A stretch of 64,000 bases of DNA from Paragordius varius. Taxonomy: Eukaryota > Animalia > Nematomorpha. The notes below the pieces were generated by a model. It ran no database searches. It was not told the DNA's origin and worked only from the letters and a program-made list of their open reading frames with translations. Shown here one piece after another: positions 6,245-53,629 of this stretch. Positions within the stretch are counted from its first letter, which is position 1. Each line of letters begins with the position of its first letter. A program made the position numbers and the translations under genes. The DNA is taken from positions 7,006,001 through 7,070,000 of the forward strand of contig OZ176053.1 of assembly GCA_964247055.1 (NCBI GenBank), in the 5' to 3' direction.

Positions 6245-6720
6245 AATATGGTAACAGCATCCGATAAAGAAACTATATCTTTAAAGCGGGTAAAACGGTT
6301 TTCCTTGTTAAATAATGGTGAAAGAAAAATCAATCTCGAATACTGTGCTAGAGAAGGCATTTGATTTTTCTCCAAATATAATAACAACAGCCGATAATGA
6401 GTGCTGAGAATCGGTTAAAACAATCTTTTTTTATAGTAATAGAGCGGTACTTATCATTTACGCGACCATGTCTCATAACACATTTGATAATCACATTCAT
6501 ACTGCAATACTATATTCCGAAACCACTGAAATTTAAAAAATTGATACCGGGTATTATAAGAAAATAAATCAATTGGCCTCCTATAGATGTTGAAGAATTT
6601 TTTTAAGAAGAAACCGAATGAATACCCCGAATGGTCAAAGCTTCAACACATGACGCTCTCAAATTTTACGTTCACGCTCAAAACTACGATCCAAAAAACT
6701 TACTTCCAAATTCACCGTAA
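6245..6720 (+). pseudogene. Pseudogenised 3' part of the lysine-rich/WPPIDVE gene family (variant a)
   Basis: Translates KPLKFKKLIPGIIRK*INWPPIDVEEFF with frameshifts and ends AATTCACCGTAA (NSP*). DNA homology to roughly 20300-20826 is visible. Confidence 0.85.
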
Positions 6721-7191
6721 GAGTTTTTTAACACAGTTCTAGATATATATATACATTTTAATAAATTAAATTTTATTATCGCCCTAAATCAGAAAATTTT
6801 GTTGGATATAATCCTGCAAATAAACCCAATTTAAATAATTAAATTTATTCATTAATGAGATTTTATGAATCCTTTGTTTCAGACATTTGAGTTTATTTTT
6901 ATGTATGAGTCAATACCTTCTTCAAATTAAGGGTACAGATATATTTATAACTATTATTCGTTTATAAATTGTAAAAAATTTATTTATTTTATTATATTTT
7001 GCCTTAAAAATTATATCAATTGAAAATCTTATACCATTTAATATGGTTGTGCGAAAAACATATTTGTGAAAATTTTGACTGACTATCTTTATAACGACAC
7101 TAAAGAATCATAATATAAATGAATATAGTTCTGCAATACAATTCGCCTAATCATCTTTGTAATTTATTGTTAAGATTTGGTAATATATATA

Positions 7192-8660: not shown

Positions 8661-8720
8661 TCAAATTAGGGTTAGGGTTTTTGTAATCAAAGGGTTATAT
8701 CAACGTTTATATATAAATAC

Positions 8721-9178
8721 ATTTTGTCTTCAAGAGTATCTTTAAACACTTTAAGTTAGTCCTTAAACATTTAAAGTTAATCCTTAAACATTTCATTGGT
8801 CCTTTAACTCTTTTTCGTTTTAAGTTTTATAAATCAAACTTTGTATCATTCATCCATTTAATGATTTTTAACTTATTCTCTTAATTCAATATAGACGCTA
8901 AATAAATATCAACTTTTAAACAATCTATCTTATTAATTTTTTAAAAAAATATTTTATATATACGTATATATAGGTTTTCTAAGCCATTAATTACAAATTC
9001 CCATGAAACATCTATAAATTAATAATTTTTTTGAATTGAAATTTGAGTTGAAACAAATAAATCTGGTTGTAAGAACAATATCAAAATTATGATCAATAAA
9101 TTTCAAAATTTAAGGACAAATTGAAAATGATCTAGGACTTACCTGAAGTGTGTTCAAGGGCACTCTTGAAGTGCAAAT
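8721..9178. mobile_element. TA-flanked 21-bp-subrepeat MITE copy (inverted relative to 10796-11245)
   Basis: ATTTTGTCTTCAAGAGTATC ... CACTCTTGAAGTGCAAAT termini, followed by (TA)n. Confidence 0.65.
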
Positions 9179-9647
9179 TATATATATATATATATATGTT
9201 ACCAAATCTTAACAATAGTTTACAAAGATGATAATTTTAGGCAGGAAGTAGTAAAGAATTGTATTGCAGAACATGATTCCCCCATGAAATGATTCTTTAG
9301 TGCCGTTTATAAAGATAGCCAGTCAAAATTTTCACATACGAATCAGGCACGTCCATATAGAATGGATAATTTTAAAATTGATATAATTTTTATGGTGTTT
9401 TTAAAATTAAATATTTTTTTACAACTAATCGAATAAGAACTATAGAATTTATTTGTGCCCGTAATTTGAAGAAGGTGTTCATTCATACAATAAAATAAAC
9501 TCAATCTGAAAGCTATGATCCATAATATCTCTATTCTCTAATGAATAATACTAATTATTTAAATTGAGTTTATTTACAGGATATATTTTCCGACAAAATT
9601 TTCTTATTTAGGGCAAAATTTATCATAAAATATAGATCTGTTAACTC

Positions 9648-9992
9648 TTACGGTGAATTTGGAAGTAAGTTTCGTAATATGTTGATGATTTGAGCATTAG
9701 TCGCATTCATTAAGTTTTTTCTTTAAAAAATTCTTCAACATCTATAGGAGGCCAATTGATTTATTTTCTTATAATTCACGGTATCAATTTTTTAAATTTC
9801 AGTGGTTTCGGAATATAGTGTTGCCAGTATGAATCTGATTTGAGATGTTGTAGGAGGCATGGTCGCATAAAGGATAAGTACCGCTGTATTACTATTAAAA
9901 AAGATTGTTTAAACCGATTCTTATCACTCATTATCGGCTGTTGTTATCATATTTGGAGCAAAATTAAATGCCTTCTGTAACACAGTATTCGA
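9648..9992 (-). pseudogene. Pseudogenised WPPIDVE-family 3' fragment (variant b), inverted
   Basis: The reverse complement reads ...AATTGGCCTCCTATAGATGTTGAAGAATTT...AATTCACCGTAAGAG and contains in-frame stops. Confidence 0.85.
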
Positions 9993-10106
9993 AAAAATTT
10001 CAGGAGTTAAATTATGTATATATAGATCAATCAAGATATACATCAGTCAATTAATCTACATCGCTAGTAAAAAAATTTTCAATAAAAAACTGAATGAATG
10101 CGCCGA

Positions 10107-10335
10107 TGCGACCATGCCTCCTACAACATCTGAAATCAGATTCACTGGCAACACGATAGGACTCAAATATTTCAAAACCAATGAAATTTAAGATGTGGAT
10201 ACCGGATATTATAAGAAAAAAAATCAATTGGCCTTTTATAGATGTTAAAGAATTTTTTTAAGAAAAAACTGAATGAATCCGCCTAATGCTCAAAGCATCA
10301 ATATATTACGAAACTTACTTCCAAATTCACCGTAA
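10107..10335 (+). pseudogene. Pseudogenised WPPIDVE-family 3' fragment (variant b)
   Basis: WIPDIIRKKINWPFIDVKEFF*, then AATTCACCGTAA. Confidence 0.85.
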
Positions 10336-10795
10336 GAGTTAACAGATCTATATTTTATGATATATTTATTGCCCTAAATGAGAAAATTTTGTCGGAAAAT
10401 ATATCCTGTAAATAAACTCAATTTAAATAATTAGTATTATTCATTAGAGAATAGAGATATTATGTATCTTAGCTTTCAGACTTTGAGTTTATTTTATTGT
10501 ATGAGTGGACACCTTCTTCAAATTACAAAGGGCACAAATAAATTCTATAGTTATTATTCGATTAATTGTATATTTAATTTTAAAAAGACCTTAAAAATTA
10601 TATCAATTTTAAAATTATCCATTCAATATGGACGTGCCTGATTCGTATGTGAAAATTTTGACTGGCTATCTTTATAAACGGCACTAAAGAATCAATAGGG
10701 GAATCATGTTCTGCAATACAATACTTTACTACTTCCTGCCTAAAATTATCATCTTTGTAAACTATTGTTAAGATTTGGTAATATATATATATATT

Positions 10796-11245
10796 ATTTG
10801 CCCTTCAAGAGTGCCCTTGAACACACTTCAGGTAAGTCCTTGATCATTTCCAGTTGGTCCTTAGATTTTAAATTTTATTGATCATAATTTTGTTATTGTT
10901 CTTTAAACCAGATTTATTTGTTTCAACTCAAATTTTTCCAATTCAACAAAATTATTAATTTATAGGTGTTTCATGGAAATTTGTAATTAATGGCTTAGAA
11001 AACCTATATAATTATTACGTATATATAAAATATTTTTTTAAACAATTAATAAGATTTGATATTTATTTAGCGTCTATATTGAATTAGGAGAATAGGTTAA
11101 AAATCATTAAATGGATGAATGATACAAAGTTTGATTTATAAAACTTAAAACAAAAAAGAGTTAGGACCAATGAAATGTTTAAGGATTAACTTTAAATGTT
11201 CAAGGACTAACTTGAAGTGTTTAAAGATACTCTTGAAGACAAAAT
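10796..11245. mobile_element. TA-flanked 21-bp-subrepeat MITE copy
   Basis: ATTTGCCCTTCAAGAGTG ... GATACTCTTGAAGACAAAAT termini. Further copies at 38882-39343, 54146-54657, 55606-56060 and 57678-58127, and a partial copy at 40090-40310. Confidence 0.65.
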
Positions 11246-11266
11246 GATATATTATATAATCTATAT

Positions 11267-13717
11267 CAGTGATACTCAAACCGCGGCCCGCGGGCCGCAT
11301 GCGGCCCTAAGTGCTCTTTAAAAATGCACTATGACTGATATTTATTTTTTTTTAAATAATATTTATTTTTTACCCAATTTGAAATGTAGAAAAATTTTCT
11401 ACATTAAAATAATTTTAAAATTTATGATTTATGGGCACACGTTGTTTCTTCTTCTTTTCTTTTTGAAATTTTTATTGCATTTCTTTTTTATTTTCACCCA
11501 TTGCACATACATTTCATTATCCTGCATCATTTTTAAAACTCATTCTCATAAAATATTTTCAACTCAATATCATTAAATTTCAACTTGTTTTTTATAGCAT
11601 AATTCAATTTATATTCCTATCTTTTTTACAGAATATTTAAACATAAATTCAAAGGATGACATCTAATGCCAAAAAACGTAAATTATCCGATGAAAATCGC
11701 TCCTTTAAAAAAGAATGGGAAACTAGTTTTTTTGTAGTTTTAAATAACAATGTTGCTACCTGCCTTATATGCAAGGACAATATAATTATAAAAAAATTCA
11801 ATATTGAAAGACATTTTAAAATCCATCATTCTCATAAATTACCAGAAAATCTTGAGGAAAGAAATGAAAAATATAAAAATTTTAAGGAATTATACGAGAA
11901 AGAAAAATCTATTATGGCCATAGCTTTTTCCCAGGAAAAAGCTGTAACATTAGCTTCGTATGAAATATGCTATATTTTAGGAAAAAATATGAAACCGTTT
12001 ACTAATTCCCAACTAATAAAAGAATGTTTAATAAATGGTTGCACTTTTTTATTTGATAAATTCCATAATAAAGATCAAATCATGAGACAAATTAAAAAAC
12101 TTCAACTTTCTGATTCAACATGTGCTCGACGCATTGAAGATATGTCTAAATATATTTTTAACAATACATTATTGGCTCTGAAAAATTGCAAATACTTCAG
12201 TATTGCAATCGATTCCAGCACTGATATAAGTTCAACACCTCAATGTGCGCTCTTCGTGAGATTTTGCAACGACAACATAATCAACGAGGAATATTTGAAA
12301 TTTTTACCAATGAATAATACCACAAAAGGCAGTGATTTTCTTGAAGTAATTAGCACCTTTTTCGATAATAATGGTATATCTATGAAAAAATTGGTTTCGA
12401 TCTGCACAGATGGCTGTCCCTCTATGATTGGAATAAACAAAGGGTTTATTTCTCTTTTAAAAAACAAATATAATTTGCAAAATCTATTATCCTTTCACTG
12501 CTTTATTCATCAGCAAAACTTGGTTTCGCGTGTAAAAGATGAATCACTAAATTTAGTAATTAAAACGGTTGTGGATATAGTTAACTACATCCGTGGCAGA
12601 GAATTCAATCACCGTAAATTCAAAAACCTCCTGAAAGATATCCACAGTGAGTTTGATGATATTCTTTTGTACACCGCTGTGAGATGGCCAAGCCTTAGCA
12701 AAGTATTGAATAGATTTTTTGATTTAAGACATGAAATTCTATTATTTATAAAAGATAACAGAAAGTTTGACGAGGAAATTAATAGTGACAAATGGTGGGT
12801 TTTATTAGCCTACCTTTGCGACATTACTTATAAACTTAGTACTTTTAATACAAGTCTTCAAGGGAGCAAAATAATAACCCAATTTGCTAATCATATATTT
12901 GCTTTTGAAGAAAAATTAATAATATATAAACAAGATTTTATAGATAAAACACTCCTACATTTTCCAACACTCAAAACGATTCATAAAGAAAATATGGAAT
13001 TTACCGCGGATATTAATTTAATAATAGACAATCATTTAACATTTTTATCTAATGAGATGAAATTCAGATTTCAAGAATTAAAAAATATAAAAAATTGCTT
13101 AAAGCTAGTGGAAAATCCATGGCATATGGATATATCCAACATTAAGCAACTTGAGCTTTTCGGTTTTGATCAGGCGGTTATCATTGAAGAATTCGTTGAT
13201 TTTAAAAATGATTCCAATTTGGAAGCTATATTTAAGGAAAACCGTAGAGAAGAAAGATATGTAGAGTTTTGGCAAGTTGTGCCAAATAAATATGAAAATA
13301 TAAAAAAATGTGCTCAAGTTGTCCTAACTATTTTTCCATCAACTTACACATGTGAGACGGCATATTCAAAAATGAAGTATATTAAGAATACTTACAGAAA
13401 TCGCTTAACTAATGATCATATGGACAACGTATTAAGAATGGCCTGCCATGAGGCGAAACCAAATTTGTCAAAAATTATTGGTTAATATTAAAATAAATGT
13501 TGTTATCTATATATTTTAATTTTTAAAACTAAATGGTACAAAACGAATTTTTAGCTGGATTTACATGCGACCCGCAAAAAATTTATTGTGCTGATTTAAA
13601 GTATAAATATGTGCGTTGTCAAATAGCTATGGAATATTTGCCATTATAAGCTTCATGGCCCTCGAAAAAAAAATATGTTTTATTTGGCCCGTCAAATTTT
13701 TTTGGTGAGTACCACTG
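11267..13717 (+). mobile_element. Full-length hAT DNA transposon (SPIN/Charlie/Buster-like), 2451 bp
   Basis: TIRs CAGTGATACTCA / TGAGTACCACTG match 11/12. The 8-bp TSD ATCTATAT is at 11259-11266 and 13718-13725. Subterminal GCGGCCCGCGGGCCGCATGCGGCCC is present, and it encodes one 609-aa transposase. Confidence 0.97.
11656..13485 (+). CDS. hAT transposase, GTF2IRD2/SPIN-like, 609 aa, uninterrupted
   Basis: N-terminal KKRK and a BED-like CLIC...H..HH. Catalytic triad in IAIDSSTD, ICTDGCPSM and STYTCETAYS; CFIH motif; VRWPS where the family usually has RWLS; C-terminal YRNRL dimerisation region. Confidence 0.95.
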   Translation: MTSNAKKRKLSDENRSFKKEWETSFFVVLNNNVATCLICKDNIIIKKFNIERHFKIHHSHKLPENLEERNEKYKNFKELYEKEKSIMAIAFSQEKAVTLASYEICYILGKNMKPFTNSQLIKECLINGCTFLFDKFHNKDQIMRQIKKLQLSDSTCARRIEDMSKYIFNNTLLALKNCKYFSIAIDSSTDISSTPQCALFVRFCNDNIINEEYLKFLPMNNTTKGSDFLEVISTFFDNNGISMKKLVSICTDGCPSMIGINKGFISLLKNKYNLQNLLSFHCFIHQQNLVSRVKDESLNLVIKTVVDIVNYIRGREFNHRKFKNLLKDIHSEFDDILLYTAVRWPSLSKVLNRFFDLRHEILLFIKDNRKFDEEINSDKWWVLLAYLCDITYKLSTFNTSLQGSKIITQFANHIFAFEEKLIIYKQDFIDKTLLHFPTLKTIHKENMEFTADINLIIDNHLTFLSNEMKFRFQELKNIKNCLKLVENPWHMDISNIKQLELFGFDQAVIIEEFVDFKNDSNLEAIFKENRREERYVEFWQVVPNKYENIKKCAQVVLTIFPSTYTCETAYSKMKYIKNTYRNRLTNDHMDNVLRMACHEAKPNLSKIIG

Positions 13718-18120: not shown

Positions 18121-19330
18121 ACGGTCCCCGAGACATTGTGTGCGGCCCGCGAAAAATTCGAGAATCTATAATTTGCAAAAATATGCTCACAGCTCATTAA
18201 AGTTGATATTTTTTAGACACAATCCAATGTGTTTTGCTTATATCTTTTATACGATACATTTTAGTGATATTTTTTGAATGAAGCTTTTGGCCTTTATCAA
18301 AAAAAATTTTCTTCACAAAATGAGCATAAATCTTGCTATTTTCAGATATGGAGCAGTTTACACAAAAGTGAATATGACTTTGTTTATCAAGCGGCATTAG
18401 AGCACAAAAATTCCTGAAATCAAAAAACGTCGATAGATCCTTTTTTCTGCATCGAATCGAATGAAAAAGGGATTAATATAATATTTGAGCTTTAGCGTTG
18501 ATAGAAATTATCGAAACACTTTGTTTTTATAAGGCTTAATTTTTTGGAGGCTTATTGGCGAAACTCTATAACTCTATATAGATTTAATATATGATTGTTT
18601 TGATAAAAATCAATATCGTTTACCGTATATTAACAAATTTATGATTTATGATTCACCCTGAAATGATTTTTTGACCTTATATTTTTGGTCTTAATGAGCT
18701 CCCAAAAAAGAAGAATCTTAATTGATAACATTGCGTTTGTAACTATCCTTATTCTATACATAAACAAATTAAATTTAATTGACGCTTTTTTATTTAATTT
18801 TATTGGACCTAATGTGAGATAAAAAAATTTTAATTTTGGTTATTAACAGAAATACATACCTTTTTTAGTATATTTACCGCATATATCATTTTAATATTAA
18901 TTAACCTGAAACTATCTATCGAATGATATATCAATCCATTAATATTTATATTGCAGCCTACGGTGTTATATTCTACTAGAATAGATAAGTTTTTTAATCT
19001 GAAAGCAAAATCTCCAGGATTGCTTTAAATTTTTTATGTATGCTAGAGATTAAATAAAGTTATTTCGGAAAAAAATAAATATCTTGCGCGGCCCAAAGAG
19101 ACCGTATGCGTGACCCGCGAAAAAATCGGAAATCCATAATTTGCAAAAATATGCTCAGTTTTAGATAATTATTATTTCTTAAATTCAAATTAGCCTATTG
19201 AATTGATAACGAAATTTTTTTTATCGTGCTTGTATTTTTTACTAATGTAAATTGAATAAAATATTTTTGAATGCCCTTACATATTTAAATGCGGCCCGCC
19301 GGTTTATTGCGTCAAAAATGCGCTCCCCGG
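18121..19330. mobile_element. Degenerate hAT-like remnant with duplicated subterminal block
   Basis: Direct repeats GCGGCCCGCGAAAAATTCGAGAATCTATAATTTGCAAAAATATGCTCA (~18140) and GTGACCCGCGAAAAAATCGGAAATCCATAATTTGCAAAAATATGCTCA (~19110), plus GCGGCCCGCC at ~19290. These resemble the 3' subterminal GCGACCCGCAAAAAATT of the hAT at ~13567. Confidence 0.4.
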
Positions 19331-19590
19331 AAAGATGTTTTAAATATCCCTAAATGAATGCTTTAAATTGTGCTTCATATAAATTTTATTTATGTAGTTT
19401 TTTCTGCAATGATTAACAAATGGTTAAATTTTTTTAATCTTGACTAAATCACGCAATACGTCAGTGCGCAGCTAGTAATATATACTATGAATATTATTGA
19501 TATGAGTGTCAATAATCAAAACTTTAAACGTTTTCATTGTTATACCTTCTAAAATTTAAAACAAATTTTTAAAATCATAATTTGATATTA

Positions 19591-20826
19591 ATGAAAAAGT
19601 GCGAAATTTCGAAAGCTAAAAAGCGAAAGATAAAGATGAATTGTTCAAAAAACAAAAAGAACAAAACAAAAAAGCAGAGTATGAAAAAAATGTGCAAGCG
19701 TCAACCTCAACGTCCTTTGGCAAATAAAAAGCGACATCTCAAGAAACGAAAAGCACCCAAAAAGAGCCCTAAAAACACTAAAATTAAAACGCTGAAAAGT
19801 AACAAAGGTGGAAGGAATTCGAAAAAACACTCTATAACTCAAAAGAAGCGTTTCAACTCCAAAAATAACAAAGGAAAAAGAAATACAGCGATAAAGTGTA
19901 GAAAGGTCAGTGAAAAACGAAAAATTAAAACTACTACTACAAGAAACAAAGCACCCAAGAGAAAAAAGCAAACTGGAAGAAAATTAAAAAAATATGTTGG
20001 AAATAAAAGATTAAGATGCAACAAACTCACAATTGTAACGGATCATCCTTCACAAAATCAGTCTGATAATGATTCAGTAATAGTACCGGAAACAAATGTT
20101 CCTACCCAGACATTAAACAAAAACATTTCAACAGATTCTTCGAAATTAATTAATAGCTCTCCTGCTGTAAGTAAAAAACCCCGAGAAATTACAATACATA
20201 CAACAAAAGAGTTAAAGCAGTCTGCTTTGTCAAACAATAGTACAGCAACAATTAATAATATCCTCGAAACTCTTACGCCTGCAGAAAAACATTTAGATAA
20301 GACTGTTTCTAATATAATAGCCACATCTTATAATAATTCCCCAGTAACAGTTATGCCTTCAAAAAAAGGGTTAAAACGGTCTAATTGTACAGCAAAAATC
20401 AATTTCGAAACCACTATGCCTACGAAAAAACCTTCAAAGCCTGTTCAAAACATAATAACAACAAATGAGTGCGAAAAAACAATTATGCCTTCCAAACGGT
20501 TAAAACAACCTTCTTTGTTAAATAGTGATTCAACAATAGTTATACCTGATGCAACCATGACTAGATCTGAAAATCAGATTTGTGAAAACACGATTTCCAC
20601 ATTAAATCCAAAACCAGTAAAATTAAAAAAATGGATACCAGATTATATAAGAAAAGAAGCCGATTGGCCGCCCATAGACGTTGAGGATTTTTTTTTAAAG
20701 AAAAAATTAAAAGAATTGCGACTTATTCTTAAGTCATCAATCATAGGACACGCTGAAATTTCACGTTCACGTTTCCAACTGCCACCCAAAAAATATACTT
20801 CCAATATTAATTATAATTCTCCGTAA
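19591..20826 (+). CDS. Unrecognised protein, 411 aa from the first ATG: highly basic N-terminus, S/T/N-rich repeats and a conserved C-terminal domain
   Basis: A 1.2-kb stop-free frame in very AT-rich DNA. The track's start at 19582 is TTG; the first ATG is 19591. About 64 K+R vs 2 acidic residues in the first ~147 aa (hand count). The C-terminus aligns with 21390-21842. Confidence 0.8.
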   Translation: MKKCEISKAKKRKIKMNCSKNKKNKTKKQSMKKMCKRQPQRPLANKKRHLKKRKAPKKSPKNTKIKTLKSNKGGRNSKKHSITQKKRFNSKNNKGKRNTAIKCRKVSEKRKIKTTTTRNKAPKRKKQTGRKLKKYVGNKRLRCNKLTIVTDHPSQNQSDNDSVIVPETNVPTQTLNKNISTDSSKLINSSPAVSKKPREITIHTTKELKQSALSNNSTATINNILETLTPAEKHLDKTVSNIIATSYNNSPVTVMPSKKGLKRSNCTAKINFETTMPTKKPSKPVQNIITTNECEKTIMPSKRLKQPSLLNSDSTIVIPDATMTRSENQICENTISTLNPKPVKLKKWIPDYIRKEADWPPIDVEDFFLKKKLKELRLILKSSIIGHAEISRSRFQLPPKKYTSNINYNSP

Positions 20827-21389
20827 GAGTTTTTGACACATCATGTCCTACTATACTGATTGTTTAGTAATTTGGGCCTTAAATTATCAGCTTTTTAAAT
20901 TATTGTTAAGATTTGGTAACATATATATATTTTTAATATCATTTTTTGATTCCTAAAACACTAACTAAAACTGTCAAAAAAATTTTATCAGAGTGGAAAA
21001 TAAAGCGTTAAAGATATATATTCTATAAATTAATATTAATGATTACACGTTGATGTGAATATTAGAGCTTCAGAAGACAGCCCAGTGGCTATGTCCAATA
21101 GTGACACAGGAAGATATGTCGCAGGCAAACCATTCATAAATTATTCCCCCAAAAAAGGTAATAAATAAATAATTTAACCATTTTAAAACACCTATTACTA
21201 TACGGTTTAACTTCATTAAGATTATCATTTTAATTAAATTATATATTTATTTATTTTCTTTTATAAGATTTTAAGCTCTATTATTATGCTTAACTTATAG
21301 ATTTCAATTCAAAATATTAATTAACTATAAATTTAAAAAAGTTTACAAAATTTCGGGACCAGCAGCACATAATACAAAGATTTGGTTAA

Positions 21390-21842
21390 TTGTCACATAT
21401 TTTTGTCAAATTTGAAATATTATATTACAATCATATGCATCCAAAAAATATAACAATAGCCTATTGGCAAGAAATATACAATATTCCTTCAACAAAACGG
21501 CTAAAACGGTCCACATTTTTGTATAATGACACACCACCAATGACAAATGATTTACAAGAAGAAACAACTCCAACAACATCTCAAGATAAGATTGATGACA
21601 ACAAGCCAAGGACATCAAATAATGCAAAACCAGTGAAATATCAGAAACTGATACCGGAATTCCTGAGGGAACGAATCGATTGCATATCCCCGATTAATTT
21701 TGAACAAATTAGTTTGAAGAAAAAAATCGCCCAATTAAGAAACGTAATCAGTGCATCCGAAATCGGTCAGGCCGAATTTTTACGCTCAAGGTCGCTTCAG
21801 CGTAAAAAATTCGCAAGTGATACAAATTTCAATTCACCGTAA
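21390..21842 (+). CDS. Paralogous ORF/terminal exon of the same family (true 5' boundary uncertain)
   Basis: PSTKRLKRSTFLYND...KPVKYQKLIPEFLRERIDCISPINFEQISLKKKIAQLRNVISASEIGQAEFLRSRSLQRKKFASDTNFNSP* aligns residue by residue with the end of 19591-20826. The track start is TTG. Confidence 0.7.
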   Translation: MSHIFVKFEILYYNHMHPKNITIAYWQEIYNIPSTKRLKRSTFLYNDTPPMTNDLQEETTPTTSQDKIDDNKPRTSNNAKPVKYQKLIPEFLRERIDCISPINFEQISLKKKIAQLRNVISASEIGQAEFLRSRSLQRKKFASDTNFNSP

Positions 21843-22639
21843 GAATTTTCTTACAAAAATATAGAAATATAATTTATATTCATATAAATAATCATACGAT
21901 TCCGAATATAATAGACTAAGTGTATTCGTAATAGAAATACTAAATATTTTCGAGTTTGGGTTTAATTTATATATAAAAATTAATTAAATTTTAAAAATAA
22001 AGTGAGAAATCTATAAAAAACTCTAAAGTTTACATTTATATTGAATAGTTTCGAGTTTGATAATTTAATTTTTAGGATAGTTTTTAGTTGATTATTTTAC
22101 AATAACGTGTCGTGCTTAAGTTAATACTTTCTAAGAAATTAATTGGACTACACAAAAATGTATGCCTTAAATATCTTAAATAACTCCATAATATTTAGAA
22201 ATAATAATTATAAACATAAGATTTTATATTTACAGTACTAACCAATAATTTTAAACCAATGCTAAAATAACCAATCTAAGGTTTTATTATGCTACCTATA
22301 GTATATTTATCACAAGTTATATAGATTATATTGATTTTTACAGTAAATGCAATCTTGCGAAACTTAATGAAAAAGTAGCAATGTATAGTTTCTTACAGGA
22401 TATATTTTTTGAATTTTTTTACTAAAGCCACGAAATACTATTTTTTTTATTTGTCAGATAAAATTATGCATAATGATTAATAATTCCTATTATATTTTAA
22501 TGTGCAAATTGTTTTGTTCGTAAAAATAGAGTTTCGGAAACCCCAATATCCGATTCCAACAATGAATCTGGAATAAGGATAGTTCGCAAACCTTATTTTC
22601 CTTGGGAACATCAGTAACTTTTAAAAATGACCGAGAGAT

Positions 22640-23416
22640 ATGGTGCGTCAGTTGGGTTGTCAGTTAGTTAAAATGCCGCCACATTTTGACTAACTCCCTG
22701 GTTACAAAGGAAAATCGAAAACCGCCAAATATTCTAGTAATTATAGACAAAAAGATATGATGAGTCAGTTGGGTTTTAAGTTGGTTAAAATGCCGCCACA
22801 TTTTGACTAACTCCCTGGTTACAAAGGAAACTCGCAAACCGCCAAATATTCTAGTAATTATAGACAAAAAGATATGGTGAGTCAGTTGGGTTTTAAGTTG
22901 GTTAAAATGCCGCCACATTTTGAATAACTCCCTGGTTACAAAGGAAAATCGCAAACCGCCAAATATTCTAGTAATTAGAGACAAAAAGATATGGTGAGTC
23001 AGTTGGGTTTTAAGTTGGTTAAAATGCCGCCACATTTTGACTAACTCCCTGGTTACAAAGGAAAATCGCAAACCGCCAACTATTCTAGTAATTATAGTCA
23101 AATATGGTGAGTCAGTTGGGTTTTAAGTTGGTTAAAATGCCGCCACATTTTGACTAACTCCCTGGTTACAAAGGAAAATCGCAAACCGCCAAATATTCTA
23201 GTAATTATAGTCAAAAAGATATGGTGAGTCAGTTGGGTTTTAAGTTGGTTAAAATGCCGCCACATTTTGACTAACTTCCTGGTTACAAAGGAAAATCGCA
23301 AACCGCCAAATATTCTAGTAATTAGAGACAAAAAGATATGGTGAGTCAGTTGGGTTTTAAGTTGGTTAAAATGCCGCCACATTTTGACTAACTCCCTGGT
23401 TACAAAGGAAAATCGA
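22640..23416. repeat. 117-bp satellite array 2 (6 units plus a partial unit)
   Basis: Unit starts at 22640, 22757, 22874, 22991, 23104 (previous unit 4 bp short), 23221 and 23338. Confidence 0.97.
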
Positions 23417-24562
23417 AAAGAGAAATGCAATTAAACAGCCAAATATGGAGCTATCCATAACAGAAAAATCCGAATTACCGCCAAATTTGGATAATTCAGT
23501 AGTTACACAAAAAGAATAACTTCAGAAAAATTACAATTTAATTTATTGCAGATACTCTCCCCTTACCAAAACAATCTATAGATCAAATTATAAATAAATG
23601 AAGATCATATTTTACTTACTAATTTAACATGTGTAGAACGTTTCACTTTATTAAATACGTTAAATATTTTGTAGCAAAATAAAAATATCTGTGTATATAA
23701 GAGGGTCAAAAATTAGATCAATTTTTCGTGGACACAAACGCAGGTACACTTACAAAACACTTTATAATATACCTAGTTGATATTGTTAATTGTATTTTCA
23801 AGAAAAACAGTTAGTAATAATTCAAGTATTGTGATATTACACAAACATGTACAGGAAAAAATTTCTCTAGACAGCCTTAATTAAAAAAAAATTTGGCCGA
23901 TATTTTTTATACATTCAGGGAATTTTAGCTGCAAAAGACATGAGGACAAGCGACAACAATTGCAGGACGTTATTTCTCGCTTAGGCAGGAACGTCGGTCA
24001 AAAAAGAACTTATTTTTTCAAATTCGCGCGACAATATCATCTGACCAGATATCATTGAAGCCGGCAGAAAATTTAAGAATCGAATGGGACGAATATAGCC
24101 CAGGCCAGATTTGATTCGTAAAACTTCATCGAAAATAGAATGTAACATTAAATTTTTTTTACGAGTCAACCTACGTAAAATACAACTTCAAGCTTAACGT
24201 AGAGGGAAAAATGCTCGACGCTTTCATTGCAGGCATGGGAGTCAAAAAATTAGAATTAGATCTGTATAGCAGATTCCCCAACGCCATGTGGGAAAACGAA
24301 CCCTAACCCTAAAACAAGTGAACATTGCTCTCAATTATGAATAGGCACCTCAATTAGCACTAATCGATGGCAACATGTTACGACAACAGCTGGGAAATAT
24401 CAGAACAAGTATCGATTCTGCCGTTTAGGTCATGACTGGAATGACCTCCAACTATACTGTAAGAAAAAAATGATTGCAATCTTCAGCACATCGAATGTGA
24501 AGCCACCCCTAAGATAACATTAATAATTAATTGTAAGCCAATACGCATGATTATGGACACAG
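23417..24562 (+). repeat. Diverged paralogue of the post-satellite flank (432-1960; 47754-48880), lacking the MITE
   Basis: Collinear match from AGAGAAATGCAATT to TGGACACAG. Confidence 0.92.
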
Positions 24563-30499: not shown

Positions 30500-33400
30500 C
30501 TATGAGGTAGCAGGAGTTGGGGCATGGACTATTTGAGATTCCGAGGTGGGATGGAAGGTTTGTTCGGAGTGGGCTCCCTCGAAATGACCCGGGACACTTT
30601 CGACGCTGGGATATTTATGCAGTATTAAGGGATTAGTTTCGTATGAATTCCCTCCTGACCTACGTCGTAACTGATCTGCATGTTTACGTTTACGAATCCC
30701 TTCCTCATCTTGCACTTCATACGAGAGTAACCCCCTTCTCTCCAGAATGTGACCTGGCCGCCAGCCTACGGCCATCTCATTTTTAATATAGACAGGATCG
30801 TCTTGTTGGAATTCGCGTCTCGGTTCATTTTCGTGCTCTATAAATTCGACAGGGGTTGTTTTTACCCAAGAGATAGGATTGTGTACACGCCGTTTTAGGA
30901 ATATGGCGGAAGGCGTTTCTTTTAGCGAAGAATGCATGCTAGTTCGATACGAATAAAGGACCGTGTTGATAGCTTCATATGCATGCATTTGTTGGGTCTT
31001 AGTAGCGGCGTATTTCGTTTTTAATGTCTTTATTACTCCACTAGACCGTTTGTTTTGGGGTGATAGGGTGTTGCACAGATGTGCTTGATATTCATATGAT
31101 TTAGGAGAGTCATAAATTCTCTTGAAGTAAAATACGTGGCGTTATCGGTCACAATTTGGCGGGGAAAACCAAATCGTGCGATGTGTTTTTCCAGGCAATT
31201 TAAAACGCTTTGACTCGTTATTGATTTAAAAAGATCTATCTCTACCCACCGTGAGGCGCTATCGATAGTCACTAACCAATAATATCCGTCCACCGGTCCA
31301 GCAACATCTATATGTAACCTTTCCCATGTCAAAGTGTTAAAATTCCATCGATAGGGAAGATTTTCAGGTGCGTTAGGTCGATAGGTTTGGCAAGCCTCGC
31401 ACCTTTCCACATAATTCGCTAGATCGGTGTCTAATTCGGGCCAAAATACCGAACACCGGGCTTGGGCTTTCATTGTTTTTAGCCCGCTTGGTCCCGTATG
31501 CAGAAGTTTCAATATCGTTTCCTGCATCGCTTGTGGTATCACTAAGCGATCATTCAGGTATAACAGATTATAACAACACTCCAAGTCGTTTTTATGTTTT
31601 AAAAAAGGTTTCAGATCTTAGTCGATCCAACTGTTTGTCCTGAGAGCATTTTTAACTTTTGATAACCGTTGGTCAGTGATCGTTGCCTCTTCGACCACTT
31701 TCTTATTTACATCCAGCGTTTTTAGAGCCAAAAATCGTACCTGCTTGGTGGCCGCGGCATCTTCATCATCTGGTTGGCTATGCTCTATGGGAAGTCTCAA
31801 CGCGTCGGCTAAGTTTTCTTCCCCTTTTTTGTAAAATATTTCATACTCGTACCTGATGGTCTTCGATATCCACCTGAGCAGTTTGCTATTATTAATGTTG
31901 TTGATGTCTCTCTTCCGCCCAAATAGTGACACCAGCGGTTTATGATCTGTATATATCTCGAACGGTCTTCATATAAAGTATTTAAATTTTTCTAGGGCAA
32001 ACACTATGGCCTTGGCCTCTTTTTCGATCGTGGAATAACCCTTTTCTGCTATTGAACAAGTTCGTGACGCGTAAAAAATTGGGCGTTTCCCCTGTGGGGT
32101 CTTATGAAACAGTATTGCCCCAAACCCCTTGTTGGAAGGATATGTTTCGATCAACAAGGGAAAACAGTCGTTAATTGGCATTAAAGCCGGGGGCCTGGTT
32201 AGCAAGCTTTTTGCTTTCGCGAATTCACTATCATCTGCCGGGGTCCACCGCCAAGGTGTATTCTTTCCACTTAACTTGTGTAAGATTGCTAGGTGTGGGT
32301 GACAGTTTGGTATAAACCGCTCATGAAAATTTATTAAGCCTAAGAACGAACGTAGCTCAGTTTGTTTGTAGGTGTCGGACAATTTTTAATGGCCTCTAAT
32401 TTTTCATTGGACGGCTCAATACCTTGGTCAGAAATCACGTACCCCATGTATTTGACTCGTGAGATACCAATTTGCAATTTGTTTCGGCGCAATCGTAATC
32501 CCGCCTCTTGTAACCTTCTAAATACTTCCCTTAATCTTTGATCATGTTCCTCCCTGGTAGCTCCGGAAATTAAGACATCATCCAGGTACACACAAATACC
32601 AGGTATGTCCTTTAAAAGATTGTCCATGCATCTTTGAAAGATCATAGGTGCTGAAGTTAATCCGAATGGAAGTCGTTGGTAAGCATAAAACCCTTTGTGA
32701 GTTGTGATGGTTACTAGCGTCTGTGACGCCCGGTCTATCGGAAATTGTAAGTAAGCATCTTTCAGGTCTAAAGTGGAAAAAATTATCCCATTTGCCACTT
32801 TGGTGGCCAACTCGTCAAAAGTAGGTATCAGATGAGAATCCTTTGCTAAATAACGGTTTATACTAATTCGGAAATCGGCAATATCCTAATTTCTCCATTT
32901 CCTTTAACTATATTTACTGTGGGAGAGGCCCATATTGGGGTTTGGGTCGGATCGATAGGTCGGAGTATTTTGAGTTTAAATCTATCAATTTCATTTTCTA
33001 CTAAAGGTTTTAGAGTTAAAGGTACCCTACGACAAGGAAAAACTTTAGGTTTGGCCCCGGGGTCGATAAATAATTTTATTGGGGGCCACTTGAAAGTACC
33101 TAACTCGTCTGAAAACAATTTGTCAAAATAATCAAATAACATTTTATTATTAGGTGCTTGCGTATGTAAAACTGAAAAAACATTTTTTGGGAATTCTAAC
33201 CGAAACGCCCGCATCCAATTCATCCCAAACACGGCTGGCGGGTTAGTTTGCGTCACCACGCAGGGCAGGCACTTCTCTTCTTCATTCAAAACCACTGAAA
33301 TCATCGATTTTCCGAGTACTTCTATCGGACCATCATTGAAGGTTCGCAAATTTGGAGCTGGGAGCAAACGAGGTCGACCAATATTTACCCAAGTGCGCTT

Positions 33401-34293
33401 GCCAATTACGGATACCTCGGCGCCCGTATCGTAGATAAACGTTGTTGGTATATTATTTATTAGTACCTGAATCCGGGGGGTGTTGTTCGGGCTAGTCATG
33501 GTGCGGATTGACGGCCGTCGGAACGTTGCCTTGCATACTGTGCTGAAATGATTCCATTTGTCGCAATTGAAACACCGTTTTCCTTTTGCCGGGCAGGTGG
33601 CGAAACCATGTCGATACCCACAATTACTACATAGCTTTCGGGTTATTTGATTGATTGTATTATTATCATTAACAACTGGTTGGATACTTGAAGGAAGTTC
33701 ACTGGTATTATTATTGTTCAAATCATTATTATCTCTGATGTTGTGAACCTTTTTATCTTCTAATTCATAGGAATAAGCGATGTCTACAATCGCTTGAAGG
33801 GTTACCGGACCCCATCCTTTTTGCCATCTGGATATTTGGATTGAATTTCGCGTTCTACTCTGGGATTTTCAAGACCTACCAGGAATAAATCGCGTAATTT
33901 TGACTGAATATCCCCTTCAAATTTCCCGGCTTCACACTTTGCTTTCAGACGTTCCAGGAAATCCATGACTGATTCATCTGGCATTTTTTTTAATCGGTAG
34001 AATTCAACTCGATTTAACCATAGGCTGCTGATTGGTGATTATATCTGAGTGGCCAAGGTTGCAATTTCCTCCCATTCCATGTCATCTATGAGTTTTGGGT
34101 ATGCTAACGTTTCGATTTTCATTATTACTTGAATACCGCCGAAAGCGAGAAAAGTGCGTTTCATTGTGGTGTCATTGGATTCGATATTTTTGGAATTTAA
34201 GACTCTCCTGATGTGACGTATATATTGCGTAAAATTCATCGGTTCCTTAAAAGGCTCCAAAATCAGTTTTGAAATGTCCAACGCTTGGCTCAT
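30500..34293 (-). pseudogene. gag-pol fragmented by nonsense codons and frameshifts
   Basis: Gag twin knuckles CSNCGYRH..C/CFNCDKWNHFSTVC; protease YDTGA; RT LDLKDAY and YLDD; RNase H EKEAKA and TDHKPL; integrase HIDVAGP, VTDNA and NGLVE; C-terminal KHADQLR. Confidence 0.95.
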
Positions 34294-37989: not shown

Positions 37990-38420
37990 TATGGTAACGC
38001 ATCCGATAAAGAAACTATATCTTTAAAGCGGGTAAAACGGTTTTCTTATTTAAATAATGGTAAAAGAAAAATCAATCTCGAATACTGTGCTGCAGAAGGC
38101 ATTTGATTTTGCTCCAAATAAAATAACAACAGCCGATAATGAGTGCTAAGAATCGGTTAAAACAATATTTTAAATAGTAATACAGCGGTACTTATCATTT
38201 ATGCGACCATGCTCCCACAACATCTGAAATCAGATTCATACTGGCAACACTATATTCCGAAACCACTGAAATTTAAAAAATTGATACCGGATATTATAAG
38301 AAAATAAATCAATTGGCCTCCTCTAGATGTTGAAGAATTTTTTTAAGAAGAAACCGAATGAATGCGCCTAATGCTCAAAGCCTCAACATATTACGAAACT
38401 TATTTCCAAAATCACCGTAA
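37990..38420 (+). pseudogene. WPPIDVE-family pseudogene fragment (variant b 3' end)
   Basis: KPLKFKKLIPDIIRK*INWPPLDVEEFF, ending ATCACCGTAA. Confidence 0.85.
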
Positions 38421-40777: not shown

Positions 40778-41250
40778 TGTGAATTTGAAAGTAAGTTTTT
40801 TGGGTCGTAGTTTTGAGCGTGAACGTAAAATTTCAGAGCGTCATGTGTTAAGCTTTGAGCATTCGGGGCATTCATTCGGTTTCTTCTTAAAAAAATTCTT
40901 CAACATCCAGAGGAGGCCAATTGATTTATTTTCTTATAATACCCGGTATCAATTTTTTAAATTTCAGTGGTTTCGGAATATAGTATTGCAGTATGAATGT
41001 GATTATCAGATGTGTTATGAGACATGGTCGCGTAAATGATAAGTACCGCTCATTACTATAAAAAAAGATTGTTTTAACCGATTCTCAGCACTCATTATCG
41101 GCTGTTGTTATTATATTTGGAGAAAAATCAAATGCCTTCTGTAGCACAGTATTCGAGATTGATTTTTCTTTTACCATTATTTAACAAGGAAAACCGTTTT
41201 ACCCGCTTTAAAGATATAGTTTCTTTATCGGATGCTGTTACCATATTTGG
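40778..41250 (-). pseudogene. WPPIDVE-family pseudogene fragment (variant a), inverted
   Basis: Reverse complement of 6245-6720 with substitutions. Confidence 0.85.
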
Positions 41251-41366: not shown

Positions 41367-43648
41367 CATTATTGTAGCAAAGATCGTTGTCGATTTTTTG
41401 CTTTTTCGAAGGTGTATTTTCTCCAGTTTATATGATTGTAAGTGAGTGATGTTAACTGTTGTAAAGAGAGATTGGTTTCTTTGGTTAGGTTTTCAATCTA
41501 GCGCATCTTGCAGCGTCCACGTTTCCTAGATCCGTCGACCATGCCTTTCATTAGTTGGAATTCCAAGTCATTAGCTCTGGTAATGTGACCAAAGTATGAT
41601 AATTTCATTTTGAGGCACATGCCAATCAAGTGTATCTCGGGGTTTATTTTAAGGATTACAGTGTTTTTTACTTTATCTTTCCAAGTGATTTGAAGTGCCT
41701 TCCGCCAGCACCAGATTTCGAAGGCGTTAATGTATTTTTCGTCTACCTTTTTTATTGTCCAGCTTTCTGATGCATATAGCATGCTAGGAAATATTAGGGC
41801 TTTAACTAAACGGATTTTTGTTTTAAGTTTGATGTCGTGTGATGACCATAGTTTATTATATTTTATCATTTTTGGCTTTGCAATTCCTATTCTTCTTTTA
41901 ATGTCTGGGGTGCTGTTGTTAGTTGTATTTATAAGACTGCCTAGGTAAGTGTATTGGGACACTACTTCTTTTTGTTGGTTGTGAAAAGATAAGTTGTTAT
42001 AATGGGTATGAGCGTTTATAGTCATGATTTTAGTTTTTTTTGAAATTGATCGTCAATTCAAATTTTTGGCATTCGTTTGAGAATTCAGTTAGGAGTTTTT
42101 TCAGGTTGTCCACTGAGTTTGACAGCAGTATGGTGTCATCAGCATAATGAAGTGATGATATAATAATGCCGGCAATGCTTATACCATTTATCTATGTTCC
42201 GTAATACGCTTCTATGCAGACGTTAAAAAGAGTGGGTGAGAGGATACAACCTTGTCTTAGACCATACCCAATTACTTGTGCCATGTGGGGTTTTTATGTT
42301 TAGTGATGAATTGGAATAAAGGGATTTTATGATGTTTAAAATGTGATCTGAAACTCCCATCTGAGATATTGCCTTCCACAGCGTGTCGTGTTTCACGCTG
42401 TCGAAGGCTTTTGTAATCAATGAAGCAGATGTGGGTTTCTTTCTGAAATTCAATTTGTTTTTCGAATATCCAACGTATATTGCTGATCATGTCCCTGCAT
42501 CCGCGATTGGATCTAAATCCCGCTTGAGTATTAGAAAGTTCGGCTTCAATTATGCCTTGGATACGCCTGTGAATTATTTTGAGGAAAACTTTTGATGCTT
42601 GATTGATTAGCGCTATAGTTCTATAGTTGTTAAATGATTTAGGATCGCCTTTTTTCAAGATGGGGATGAGTATTGATTTGCACCAGTCTTGGGGGAATGA
42701 GGCGTGAGCAAATATCTTTTGGAATAAGCCAGTTAGGATATGGGGGATAAAACAAATGAGTTCGGTTGGAATATCGTTGTACCCCTCAGATTTGTTGGGG
42801 AATGGTTAAGCGCCCATTCAACTTCCTCTTTGATGATCGGCGGGTCATGTTGATAGATCTCATTGTTTTTATCGGCGTTCATGGACTGGAGCCGTATAGT
42901 TTTAATACATATGGTTCCCATTGTTTCACCAGTGTTTTTTTGTCTGTGATGATATCTCCATCTTCCTTTCTCATTGGGCCTTTGTAGATTTTAGAACTAC
43001 GTGGAGCAATGTGTACTTCAGCAAAGTAGTTGTTGTTATGTTTAGCAGCGTTTTCTAGTTTTAAGCACAGCTGATTGTAGTGATCGTTTTTGTCTTCCCG
43101 AGCGCTTTTTTGGAAATTTGCGTTAAGTGATTTGTACTCTGCCATATTATAGCGTTTAGGTTGGCGCCGTTTGTCCGCCAAATCTAAACTTTTTTGTGAT
43201 AACTTAATTTTGTTAAGATGGGATTTTTGGATAGGGATGCATTATCTGGCTGTAGTGCTAGTGATATTTTGTATTGTATTCTAAAGATTTTCAGCGTCAT
43301 CGTCTATTTCGAGTGTTTTAAATCTGTTTTCAAGTAACAAAGGAAACTCGGGGTAGATCGCAGAGAAATCTAATTTGAGTTTATGCTGAAATTTTGGTTA
43401 GCGTGAGAGAACTGTTTTAATTTTTAGTTTAGCTATAAGGAGATTATGATCAGAATAGCAGTCAGAACCAGGGTAAGTTTTTACGTTCATAAAGGAAGAT
43501 TTATATTTTTGCATACCGAGAATAAAGTCAATTTGGTTTCTGTGCTTCTTGCAAGGTGAAATCCATGTGTATAGCCTTCGCTTAGGTTGTTAGTTTGATA
43601 TGAATAATTTGTGTCCACTGCAAAATTCTATGAGGCAGTCTCCTCTCT
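41367..43648 (-). mobile_element. 5'-truncated RTE-like non-LTR retrotransposon (partial endonuclease plus RT), frameshifted
   Basis: RGDCLIEFC, PKRRLYTWISP, NQIDFIL, PGSDCYSDHNL (endonuclease). KKGDPKSFNNYRTIALIN, QAGFR, CFIDY, AFDSV, QGCILSP, YADDT, YLGS (RT). It interrupts a sequence that is contiguous at 6110-6145. Confidence 0.93.
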
Positions 43649-45255: not shown

Positions 45256-45325
45256 TTACGGTGAATTGAAATTCGTATCACTCGCGAATTTCTTACGCTG
45301 ATGAGACTTTGAGCGTAAAAATTCG
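45256..45325 (-). pseudogene. Inverted 3' fragment of the 21390-type paralogue
   Basis: EFLRSKSHQRKKFASDTNFNSP* on the minus strand. Confidence 0.8.
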
Positions 45326-45662
45326 GATCATCCTTCACAAAATCAGTCTGATAATGATTCAGTAATAGTACCGGAAACAATTGTTCCTACCCAGACATTA
45401 AACAAAAACATTTCAACAGATTCTTCGAAATTACTTAATAGCTCTCCTACTGTAAGTAATAAACCCCGAGAAATTACAATACATACAACAAAAGAGTTAA
45501 AGCAGTCTGCTTTGTCAAACATAGTACAGCAACAATTAATAATATCCTCGAAACTCTTACGCCTGCAGAAAAACATTTAGATAAGACTGTTTCTAATATA
45601 ATAGCCACATCTTATAATAATTCCCAAGTAACAGTTATGCCTTCAAAAAAAGGGTTAAACGG
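45325..45662 (+). pseudogene. Internal fragment of the 411-aa gene (equivalent to 20038-20380) with a 1-bp deletion, fused to the 21205-type sequence
   Basis: GGATCATCCTTCACAAAATCAGTCTG... matches 20040 onward; CAAAC ATAGT vs CAAACAATAGT at the frameshift. Confidence 0.9.
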
Positions 45663-45975
45663 TTTAACTTCATTAAGATTATCATTTTAATTAAATTATA
45701 TATTATATTTATTTTCTTTTATAAGATTTTAAGCTCTATTATTTTGCTTAAATTATAGATTTCAATTCAAAATATTAATTAACTATAAATTTAAAAAAGT
45801 TTACAAAATTTCGGGACCAGCAGCACATAATACAATTTGGTTAATTGTCACATATTTTTGTCAAATTTGAAATATTATATTACAATCATATGCATCTAAA
45901 AAAAATATAACAATAGCCTATTGGCAAGAAATATACAATATTCCTTCAACAAAACGGCTAAAACGGTCCACATTT

Positions 45976-46299
45976 TTGTATAATGACACGCCACCAATGA
46001 CAAATGATTTACAAGAAGAAACAACTCCAACAACATCTCAAGATAAGATTGATGACAACAAGCCAAGGACATCAAATAATGCAGAACCAGTGAAATATCA
46101 GAAACTGATACCGGAATTCCTGAGGGAACGAATCGATTGCATATCCCCGATTAATTTTGAACAAATTAGTTTGAAGAAAAAAATCGCCCAATTAAGAAAC
46201 GTAATCAGTGCATCCGAGATCGGTCAGGCCGAATTTTTACGCTCAAGGTCTCTTCAGCGTAAAAAATTCGCAAGTGATACAAATTTCAATTCACCGTAA
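45976..46299 (+). CDS. Second intact copy of the paralogous terminal domain (likely exon; track start is TTG)
   Basis: Differs from 21519-21842 by 3 synonymous changes and 1 non-synonymous change. Confidence 0.65.
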   Translation: MYNDTPPMTNDLQEETTPTTSQDKIDDNKPRTSNNAEPVKYQKLIPEFLRERIDCISPINFEQISLKKKIAQLRNVISASEIGQAEFLRSRSLQRKKFASDTNFNSP

Positions 46300-47217: not shown

Positions 47218-47753
47218 ATGGTGCGTCAGTTGGGTAGGTTAGTCAAAATGCCGCCACATTCTGCTGGTTACAAAGGAAAATCGAAAACCGCCAAATATTC
47301 TAGTAATTAGAGAGAAAAAGATATGGTGCGTCAGTTGGGTTTTAAGTTGGTTAAAATGCCGCCACATTTTGACTAACTCCCTGGTTACAAAGGAAAATCG
47401 AAAACCGCCAAATATTCTAGTAATTATAGACAAAAGGATATGGTGAGTCAGTTGGGTTTTAAGTTGGTTAAAATGCCGCCACATTTTGACTAACTCCCTG
47501 GTTACAAAGGAAAATCGAAAACCGCCAAATATTCTAGTAATTATAGTCAAAAAGATATGGTGAGTCAGTTGGGTTTTAAGTTGGTTAAAATGCCGCCACA
47601 TTTTGACTAACTCCCTGGTTACAAAGGAAAATCGAAAACCGCCAAATATTCTAGTAATTATAGACAAAAAGATATGGTGATTCAGTTGGGTTTTAAGTTG
47701 GTTAAAATGCCGCCACATTTTGACTAACTCCCTGGTTACAAAGGAAAATCGAA
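47218..47753. repeat. 117-bp satellite array 3 (degenerate first unit, 3 full units, partial unit)
   Basis: Unit starts at 47218, 47323, 47440, 47557 and 47674. Confidence 0.97.
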
Positions 47754-53136: not shown

Positions 53137-53609
53137 AATATGGTAACAGCATCCGATAAAGAAACTATATTAAAGCGGGTAAAACGGTTTTCCTTGTTAA
53201 ATAATGGTAAAAGAAAAATCAATCTCGAATACTGTGCTAGAGAAGGCATTTGATTTTTCTCCAAATATAATAACAACAGCCGATAATGAGTGCTGAGAAT
53301 CGGTTAAAACAATCTTTTTTTATAGTATTAGAGCGGTACTTATCATTTACGCGACCATGTCTCATAACACATTTGATAATCACATTCATACTGCAATACT
53401 ATATTCCGAAACCACTGAAATTTAAAAAATTGATACCGGGTATTATAAGAAAATAAATCAATTGGCCTCCTATAGATGTTGAAGAATTTTTTTAAGAAGA
53501 AACCGAATGAATACCCCGAATGGTCAAAGCTTCAACACATGACGCTCTCAAATTTTACGTTCACGCTCAAAACTACGATCCAAAAAACTTACTTCCAAAT
53601 TCACCGTAA
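53137..53609 (+). pseudogene. WPPIDVE-family pseudogene (variant a), duplicate of 6245-6720
   Basis: Essentially the same sequence, ending AATTCACCGTAA. Confidence 0.85.
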
Positions 53610-53629
53610 GAGTTTTTTAACACAGTTCT

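Follow-up and report, generated by a model that had tools for sequence, protein, structure and literature searches.

A candidate lineage-restricted gene family encoding strongly basic proteins in an ampliconic cluster of the horsehair worm Paragordius varius

Linker histones of the H1/H5 family carry a central winged-helix globular domain between tails rich in Lys, Ala, and Pro, and protamines of the P1/P2 type are shorter than ~100 aa and dominated by Arg. Sperm nuclear basic proteins (SNBPs) are a functional class of proteins that are expressed in spermatids and replace histones on sperm DNA. According to two reports, Drosophila SNBP genes evolve rapidly, are restricted to particular lineages, and gain copies in tandem or ampliconic arrays with many pseudogenes (PMC9917458; PMC10120018). 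By analogy, these expansions would be the best-described parallel of the ampliconic, fast-evolving family of basic proteins reported here. We analyzed a 64,000-nt window of the nematomorph Paragordius varius (positions 7,006,001-7,070,000 of contig OZ176053.1, hereafter C4; the assembly comprises 110.6 Mb in 44 contigs at ~29% GC), in which a full-length ('long') gene copy, an uninterrupted coding sequence (CDS) of 411 codons plus TAA, lies at 19591-20826 on the plus strand. We propose, with about even confidence on the sequence evidence, that this frame is a genuine taxonomically restricted protein-coding gene, one of seven intact full-length paralogs in an ampliconic cluster, and that its product would be a nuclear protein binding nucleic acid or chromatin.

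The preliminary description of this DNA, made from the letters alone, had reported the 411-codon open reading frame (ORF), a very basic N-terminus of ~147 aa, and internal repeats of the form NI…(M/I)PSK(K/R)xK, all of which stood up to analysis. The stop-free stretch opens at 19573, ahead of the ATG, and the other two plus-strand frames across 19591-20826 contain 35 and 37 stops. The longest open frame obtained by shuffling the ORF 2000 times with its dinucleotides preserved had 170 codons, and the N-terminal 441 nt remained open in none of 2000 shuffles. Because shuffled sequences never reach comparable open frames, the frame is far longer than chance and is not explained by A-richness. The N-terminal polycationic region (residues 1-147; 19591-20031, plus strand) contains 49 Lys and 15 Arg (43.5% K+R) against 1.4% D+E, has a pI of 11.9, and includes several KKRK/KRKK clusters and five Cys; Ala and Pro are scarce in the basic part, in which Tandem Repeats Finder detected no real tandem repeat at the DNA level. 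Residues 148-335 are rich in Ser, Thr, and Asn and roughly neutral, and residues 336-411 are mildly basic. The internal repeats (20236-20506, plus strand) form two ~47-aa units, each made of two ~20-aa sub-repeats of the pattern NI(I)x…(M/I)P(S/T)K(K/R)xK; the core [MI]P[ST]K[KR] occurs at residues 255, 276, and 299, each time preceded by NI(I) or IN, and 20236-20377 matches 20383-20506 at 66% nucleotide identity. The protein contains no signal peptide or other hydrophobic segment, either at the N-terminus or elsewhere, and is predicted not to be secreted. An AT run resembling a TATA box, TAATATATAC, at 19474-19488 (plus strand), ~105 nt upstream of the ATG, is a candidate core promoter, and the first AATAAA past the stop, at 20999-21004 (plus strand; +173 nt), is a candidate poly(A) signal; the two would fit a compact single-exon unit.

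The conserved C-terminal module comprises residues 336-411 (20596-20823, plus strand), as delimited in profile A1, an alignment of the last ~130 aa that holds only two diverged lineages. In order, it consists of PVKxxKxIP(D/E)(Y/F)(I/L)R, a predicted amphipathic helix, and SxIGxAE(I/F)xRSR…KK(Y/F)xS…N(Y/F)NSP. By tblastn, the module occurs 12 times in the window, the number given in the preliminary description. Three copies are intact (20572-20823, 21621-21839, and 46078-46296), and the other nine have decayed and share stops or frameshifts (at ~6517, 9811 on the minus strand, 10175, 38257, 40976 and 45333 on the minus strand, 53406, 56690 on the minus strand, and 57057). Ten of the 12 end exactly in AAY-TCN-CCN-TAA-G (NSP-TAA-G); of the other two, the one at ~38.4 kb ends in KSP-TAA-G and the minus-strand copy at ~40.8 kb lacks the CGT, hence its stop is lost. 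The earlier statement that all copies but one end in N-S-P-TAA-G is accordingly right for TAA-G, present in 11 of 12, and needs correction for one change of N to K. Weak tblastn matches to 'PDLIRK…' (1503, 24105, and 48424) fall inside a retrotransposon fragment with a DTG protease motif and were discarded as chance.

To place the family in the genome, the whole assembly was searched in six frames with the C-terminal 84 aa, profile A1, and the first 281 aa. All family matches fall in C4:6.98-7.41 Mb, 430 kb of a single contig; the profile search at E≤1 returned nothing outside this region and identified no parent gene elsewhere in the genome. The cluster contains seven full-length copies, about ten short 3′ copies, and ~30 decayed fragments, a count that bears out the amplification proposed earlier, and the N-terminal polycationic region is confined to the seven full-length copies. 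This is the organization of an ampliconic, taxonomically restricted gene family. Five full-length copies stand in direct orientation at a spacing of 42.7-47.8 kb as a tandem macro-repeat and are identical but for a deleted codon, a single substitution, and a stop loss (TAA to CAA); two others are inverted, lie ~200 kb further on, and share 92-94% protein identity. The stop loss (C4:7071986-7075237) adds 11 codons and also destroys the GT of the putative splice donor discussed below. In L006 (C4:7407705-7410956), one of the two inverted copies, 189 nt (63 codons) are deleted in frame between the internal repeats. The most diverged full-length copy (L007, C4:7373716-7376967) carries 12 differences packed in 100 nt of its module (window-equivalent 20672-20771), and its tail, RSRSKLPPKKF, is closer to decayed copies than the tails of other long copies are, which suggests either an ancestral state or conversion from another lineage.

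The order of elements at the locus is fixed: a long copy is followed 560 bp downstream by a short copy and ~0.8 kb further by a 117-bp satellite. The 'short' paralog of the window (21435-21842, plus strand; frame open from 21390) equals the last ~130 residues of the long type at 41-47% identity, and the second short-type copy of the macro-unit (45892-46299, plus strand) lacks the first ATG of the other. The window covers one 46.9-kb macro-unit and part of the next, and the units are 98.6-99.5% identical. Within the macro-unit are sub-duplications and inverted pairs of decayed copies, among them a pair (8710-9868 versus 10106-11258) with 1.15-kb arms at 90% identity. Apart from transposable elements (TEs), namely an intact hAT, Gypsy-like elements, and fragments of long interspersed nuclear elements (LINEs), no other host-like ORF was seen in it.

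The pattern of change among the copies speaks for a coding gene. Four indels separate the full-length copies, each with a length divisible by three (-3, -3, +3, and -189 nt), and their 500-bp upstream flanks contain many out-of-frame indels. None of the seven full-length copies has a premature stop; in simulation, the probability of no premature stop after ~60 random substitutions was ~0.03-0.07, and the joint probability of in-frame indels throughout and no stop in ~60 substitutions is ~5e-4 under neutrality. A truncated pseudogene of the long gene's middle (45324-45667, plus strand; 97.7% identical to 20039-20384), which has the same divergence as the full-length copies, carries two 1-nt deletions. 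Between the long and short types, the module differs at 52 of 170.5 nonsynonymous sites (pN 0.31) and at 34 of 45.5 synonymous sites (pS 0.75), and the linker preceding it looks neutral in the same comparison. These values indicate past purifying selection on the module between the two lineages. In our reading of the sequences, the frame and the C-terminal module are probably under selection now or were so recently, and the basic and repeat parts evolve freely.

We then searched for relatives. Pfam at E≤10 gave nothing usable for the whole protein, the short paralog, or the C-terminal 84 aa, and sequence searches of PDB with the protein and profile A1 gave chance-level matches only (low-complexity sequence of Mis18BP1, E=0.027; DOCK9, E=1.3). 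Word-index protein searches with residues 325-411 and 148-340 found no relatives, ESM Atlas contained no usable match, and Rfam returned nothing over 17.0-24.5 kb. A HMMER profile search of 1.84 billion representatives produced a single match, P0001, which was rejected as spurious: it is an 842-aa translated tandem repeat in which profile positions 10-45 are matched weakly eleven times. Four ORFs of the window, the intact transposase included, were all absent from a collection of 15 billion proteins by exact look-up. Proteins of this genome are apparently absent from the libraries; therefore, 'orphan' here means no relatives in other sampled taxa. To that extent, the module remains unrecognized and the family lineage-specific, as had been proposed, and a match of the module to a TE protein or a widespread family was looked for in these searches and not found.

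In the AlphaFold models, the protein is predicted to be disordered except for one or two helices near the C-terminus. For the last 130 aa, the mean predicted local distance difference test score (pLDDT) was 50, with helices at model positions 83-101 and 103-112 (pLDDT 58-68), corresponding to protein residues ~364-382 and 384-393; in the full-length model (mean pLDDT 36.5), one helix was left, at residues 364-383. A hydrophobic stripe at 369/373/376/380/384 makes the C-terminal helix amphipathic, and the SxIGxAE(I/F)xRSR…KK(Y/F) tail comes next. A Foldseek search of PDB with the low-confidence model, a check proposed for the C-terminal region in the preliminary description, found no match. Since the module offers only low-confidence helices and a conserved tail, it may be better described as a short helical or linear-motif element than as a globular fold. 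The 'novel conserved C-terminal domain' of the preliminary description is thus conserved (pN below pS), but a globular fold is not predicted, the helices having pLDDT of 50-68.

Several observations weigh against a selected and functional gene. The richness in Lys, Asn, and Thr is partly expected from any A-rich strand at 29% GC. The absence of relatives is weakened by libraries that lack this genome and by a thinly sampled phylum, and the predicted disorder is weakly supported because shallow alignments give low-confidence models. Among recent copies, dN/dS is ~1.1-1.3, a ratio for which no more than 5-6.5 synonymous changes were available; the CDS (2.6-3.2% divergence) has diverged about as much as its immediate flanks; and distant copies share identical tracts of 1.3 kb, which look like gene conversion rather than selection. 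The last three observations would also be expected of a functionless passenger, that is, a once-coding or chance A-rich ORF in a young segmental amplification whose frames stay intact through recency and gene conversion. The virtual identity of five full-length copies, the majority of pseudogenes among the family members, and the full-length copies with a stop loss and with a 63-codon deletion point the same way. The passenger explanation does not readily account for four in-frame indels out of four together with the lack of premature stops, for a fragment of equal age that is frameshifted, or for a module pN well below pS over the older long/short split, and we consider it unlikely.

A further alternative concerns the gene model. 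The alignment of the 12 copy ends revealed a 17-nt block across the stop codon (20815-20831, plus strand), AATTCTCC followed directly by GTAAGAGTT, with a strong 5′ splice-site sequence. In the form AATTC(A/T)CC-GTAAGA(G/A)TT, it is the most conserved block over four family lineages that are otherwise ~60-70% identical, and it takes in the synonymous G of CCG, a rare codon in this AT-rich DNA, and 8 nt past the stop. The conserved TAA-G, singled out earlier as a shared gene end, is therefore perhaps better read as part of this block doubling as a putative 5′ splice site. If C|GTAAGAG were a used donor, the frame would be an exon, the product would continue downstream, and the 'terminal domain' would be a duplicated exon end with its donor. 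Both the short type and one degraded lineage have a YTRAY-like branch motif and, behind it, an AG at exactly 26 nt from the GT. Introns this small exist in the genome: the alpha-tubulin gene (on another contig, C3:3257300-3260300, minus strand) has a 29-nt GT-AG intron directly after the ATG, and the beta-tubulin gene (C4:4965300-4967800, minus strand) has a 25-nt GT-AG intron after …GAK; both also carry introns of 43-81 nt, and their donors are of the GTA type and variable.

The long gene, however, has no AG at +26, and use of the next good acceptor would yield a 45-nt intron. In every lineage, splicing at the nearest plausible acceptors would add only 7-17 non-conserved residues before the next stop; therefore, the module would lie at or near the C-terminus either way. 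Splicing of the long ORF in frame onto the short ORF was also considered and rejected, as the two candidate AG acceptors checked by eye ahead of the short ORF are both out of phase. Homology among the copies extends ~100-300 nt upstream and ~20-100 nt downstream of the block, and because it reaches beyond the 17 nt on both sides, the copies are not mere exon edges. Likewise, no conserved downstream exon was found. We regard a continuing product as quite unlikely, while the 3′ end of the long gene is uncertain because the TAA-G block doubles as a strong splice donor. In a genome with introns of 25-29 nt, stop codons embedded in GTAAG call for care in gene finding.

If the frame is a coding gene, as we favor, its composition allows a route to function to be sketched. 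The NLS-like clusters (resembling nuclear localization signals) of the polycationic N-terminus would bring the protein into the nucleus, where the disordered N-terminus may bind nucleic acid or chromatin electrostatically and the C-terminal helix module may mediate self-association or docking of a partner; unequal exchange and gene conversion within the array would keep the gene at high copy number and dosage. Nuclear localization, nucleic-acid binding, and any germline role are what we infer from sequence features. Polycationic disordered nuclear or nucleolar proteins, such as the C-terminal tails of H1 and HMGN-like proteins, are alike in Lys-rich low complexity and NLS-like clusters, but the orphan protein has no sequence or profile match to such binders. 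The C-terminal R-S-R…basic-aromatic motif is, as we presume, loosely like the arginine-anchor motifs of nucleosome-binding proteins, a likeness of few residues that serves as a lead only.

Function in sperm chromatin, of the SNBP type, is one possibility within the nuclear-protein reading; charge and amplification are what points to it, and we consider it improbable. The protein is alike to protamine-like (PL) and H1-derived SNBPs, including invertebrate PL proteins and Drosophila Mst77F, Mst35B, the Dox family, and Y-linked Mst77Y, in high charge over a long disordered stretch and in rapid evolution, lineage restriction, and ampliconic copies with pseudogenes. In contrast to these, it has neither a linker-histone winged helix nor an HMG box, is 411 aa long, and is rich in Lys and Asn rather than in Arg or in the Lys/Ala/Pro combination; its conserved C-terminal helix module has no counterpart among them. 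The tests for individual families gave the same picture. Assignment to linker histones H1/H5 failed on the lack of any Pfam family at E≤10, of a folded domain in the AlphaFold models, and of more than a few Ala and Pro; assignment to protamines failed on the length, the 49 Lys versus 15 Arg, and the lack of a Pfam protamine match; and assignment to the MST-HMG box proteins (Drosophila-type HMG-box SNBPs) failed on the lack of an HMG-box or other Pfam match and of a structural match. The protamine/H1-like label of the preliminary description was therefore dropped: a winged helix and an HMG box are both absent, Lys predominates over Arg, Ala and Pro are few, and the protein measures 411 aa.

The organization of the locus also recalls genes in genetic conflict. 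Stellate/Su(Ste) and mouse Slx/Sly resemble it in multi-copy macro-units of high identity that bring together a young gene, satellites, TEs, and inverted fragments in one region; the orphan family differs from them in having no identifiable parent gene in the genome and inverted fragments too diverged to act on intact copies. The long gene could accordingly be a selfish germline gene, a segregation distorter or its antagonist, with the inverted pseudogene copies as hairpin-RNA suppressors, by analogy with Dox/Nmy of Drosophila simulans. Ampliconic organization, fast evolution, and a basic product would agree with this, as would the inverted fragment pairs with their 1.15-kb arms and the locus-specific satellite beside each module, and amplified protamine-like genes in conflict have precedents in three reports (PMC9917458; PMC10120018; PMC10317233). 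The inverted copies, however, match the intact gene at 70-72% identity and have no exact run of ≥18 nt in common with it, because of which they could not supply small RNAs against it now; present-day hairpin suppression of the intact gene was rejected on this ground. We thus hold a conflict gene of this kind to be very unlikely. The same low standing is given to a fuller version drawn from the analogy, in which a polycationic chromatin protein of the horsehair-worm lineage, arisen de novo or diverged beyond recognition, would have been amplified in intragenomic conflict of the sperm-chromatin/distorter type, with the decayed inverted copies as relics of RNA-based suppression.

Finally, a TE or endogenous-virus protein, for example a nucleic-acid chaperone or core protein, is extremely improbable: TEs and viruses often encode basic disordered proteins, hAT, Gypsy-like, and LINE fragments abound in the macro-unit, and a ~220-bp dispersed repeat lies 260-490 bp upstream of the long gene, but the protein has no Pfam match at E≤10 and no relative or other homology among the 1.84 billion proteins, a search for terminal inverted repeats (TIRs) and long terminal repeats (LTRs) around the gene found nothing convincing, and the copies stand at one locus in the fixed order of long gene, short gene, and 117-bp satellite rather than dispersed.

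The remaining family members of the window are decayed. A degraded module copy at 6516-6728 (plus strand), with in-frame stops and a frameshift, has ~71% nucleotide identity to the long gene, and its equivalent in the next macro-unit lies at 53405-53617 (plus strand). The copies at 9651-9919 (minus strand) and 10105-10336 (plus strand) form the two arms of an inverted pair, with equivalents in the next macro-unit at 56530-56798 (minus strand) and 56985-57218 (plus strand), respectively. The copy with the KSP-TAA-G end occupies 38151-38420 (plus strand), and that which has lost the CGT at the stop 40785-40985 (minus strand). An inverted fragment of a short-type 3′ end is located at 45259-45333 (minus strand).

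Other elements of the macro-unit were recorded in passing. The 117-bp satellite (1-433, 22502-23499, and 47218-47755) is exclusive to the locus and comes after each short-type copy. Within the satellite unit, GGTGAGT … GACTAAC … AG form signals resembling a donor, branch point, and acceptor ~67 nt apart, and a single frame is open, on the minus strand, which gives ORFs of 39-aa repeats 110-175 aa in length. The hAT-type transposase at 11656-13485 is intact (609 aa), and in the next unit a frameshift divides its copy (58538-60363) into pieces of 241 and 367 aa, which shows that the units have diverged since they were duplicated. The dispersed repeat upstream of the gene (19098-19330, also 18130-18189) is GC-richer, has ~70% identity, and is found just upstream of every long copy, which it might supply with promoter sequence; first-look candidates numbered at least 140, and the 40 that were scored are spread over seven large contigs. 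A Gypsy-like LTR retrotransposon (30500-33721 and 41498-43181, both on the minus strand; 41% GC) retains a gag knuckle, protease, reverse transcriptase, and integrase in several broken ORFs, and the LINE fragments of the macro-unit encode parts of a reverse transcriptase.

The mitochondrial contig (C44:5980-10320) contains perfect palindromes without spacer, with arms of 131 and 97 nt. Such palindromes are reported for Nematomorpha (PMC6649704). An array of ~72-bp hairpin units lies upstream of cox1, in which six TGA codons are read through, as expected of the invertebrate mitochondrial code.

At present, the long gene is an orphan without annotation and with a putative function, which is not a surprise in itself. 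If it is expressed, it would add a new family of sequence orphans to the strongly basic nuclear proteins and provide a clean case of gene birth and amplification in Nematomorpha, a phylum with almost no functional genomics. If its expression is specific to the testis, genes for sperm DNA packaging or for conflict would have arisen here independently. Should the conflict reading be true, an almost unstudied phylum would offer an independent counterpart, built on neither HMG nor H1 proteins, of the arms race of Dox and SNBP genes in Drosophila.

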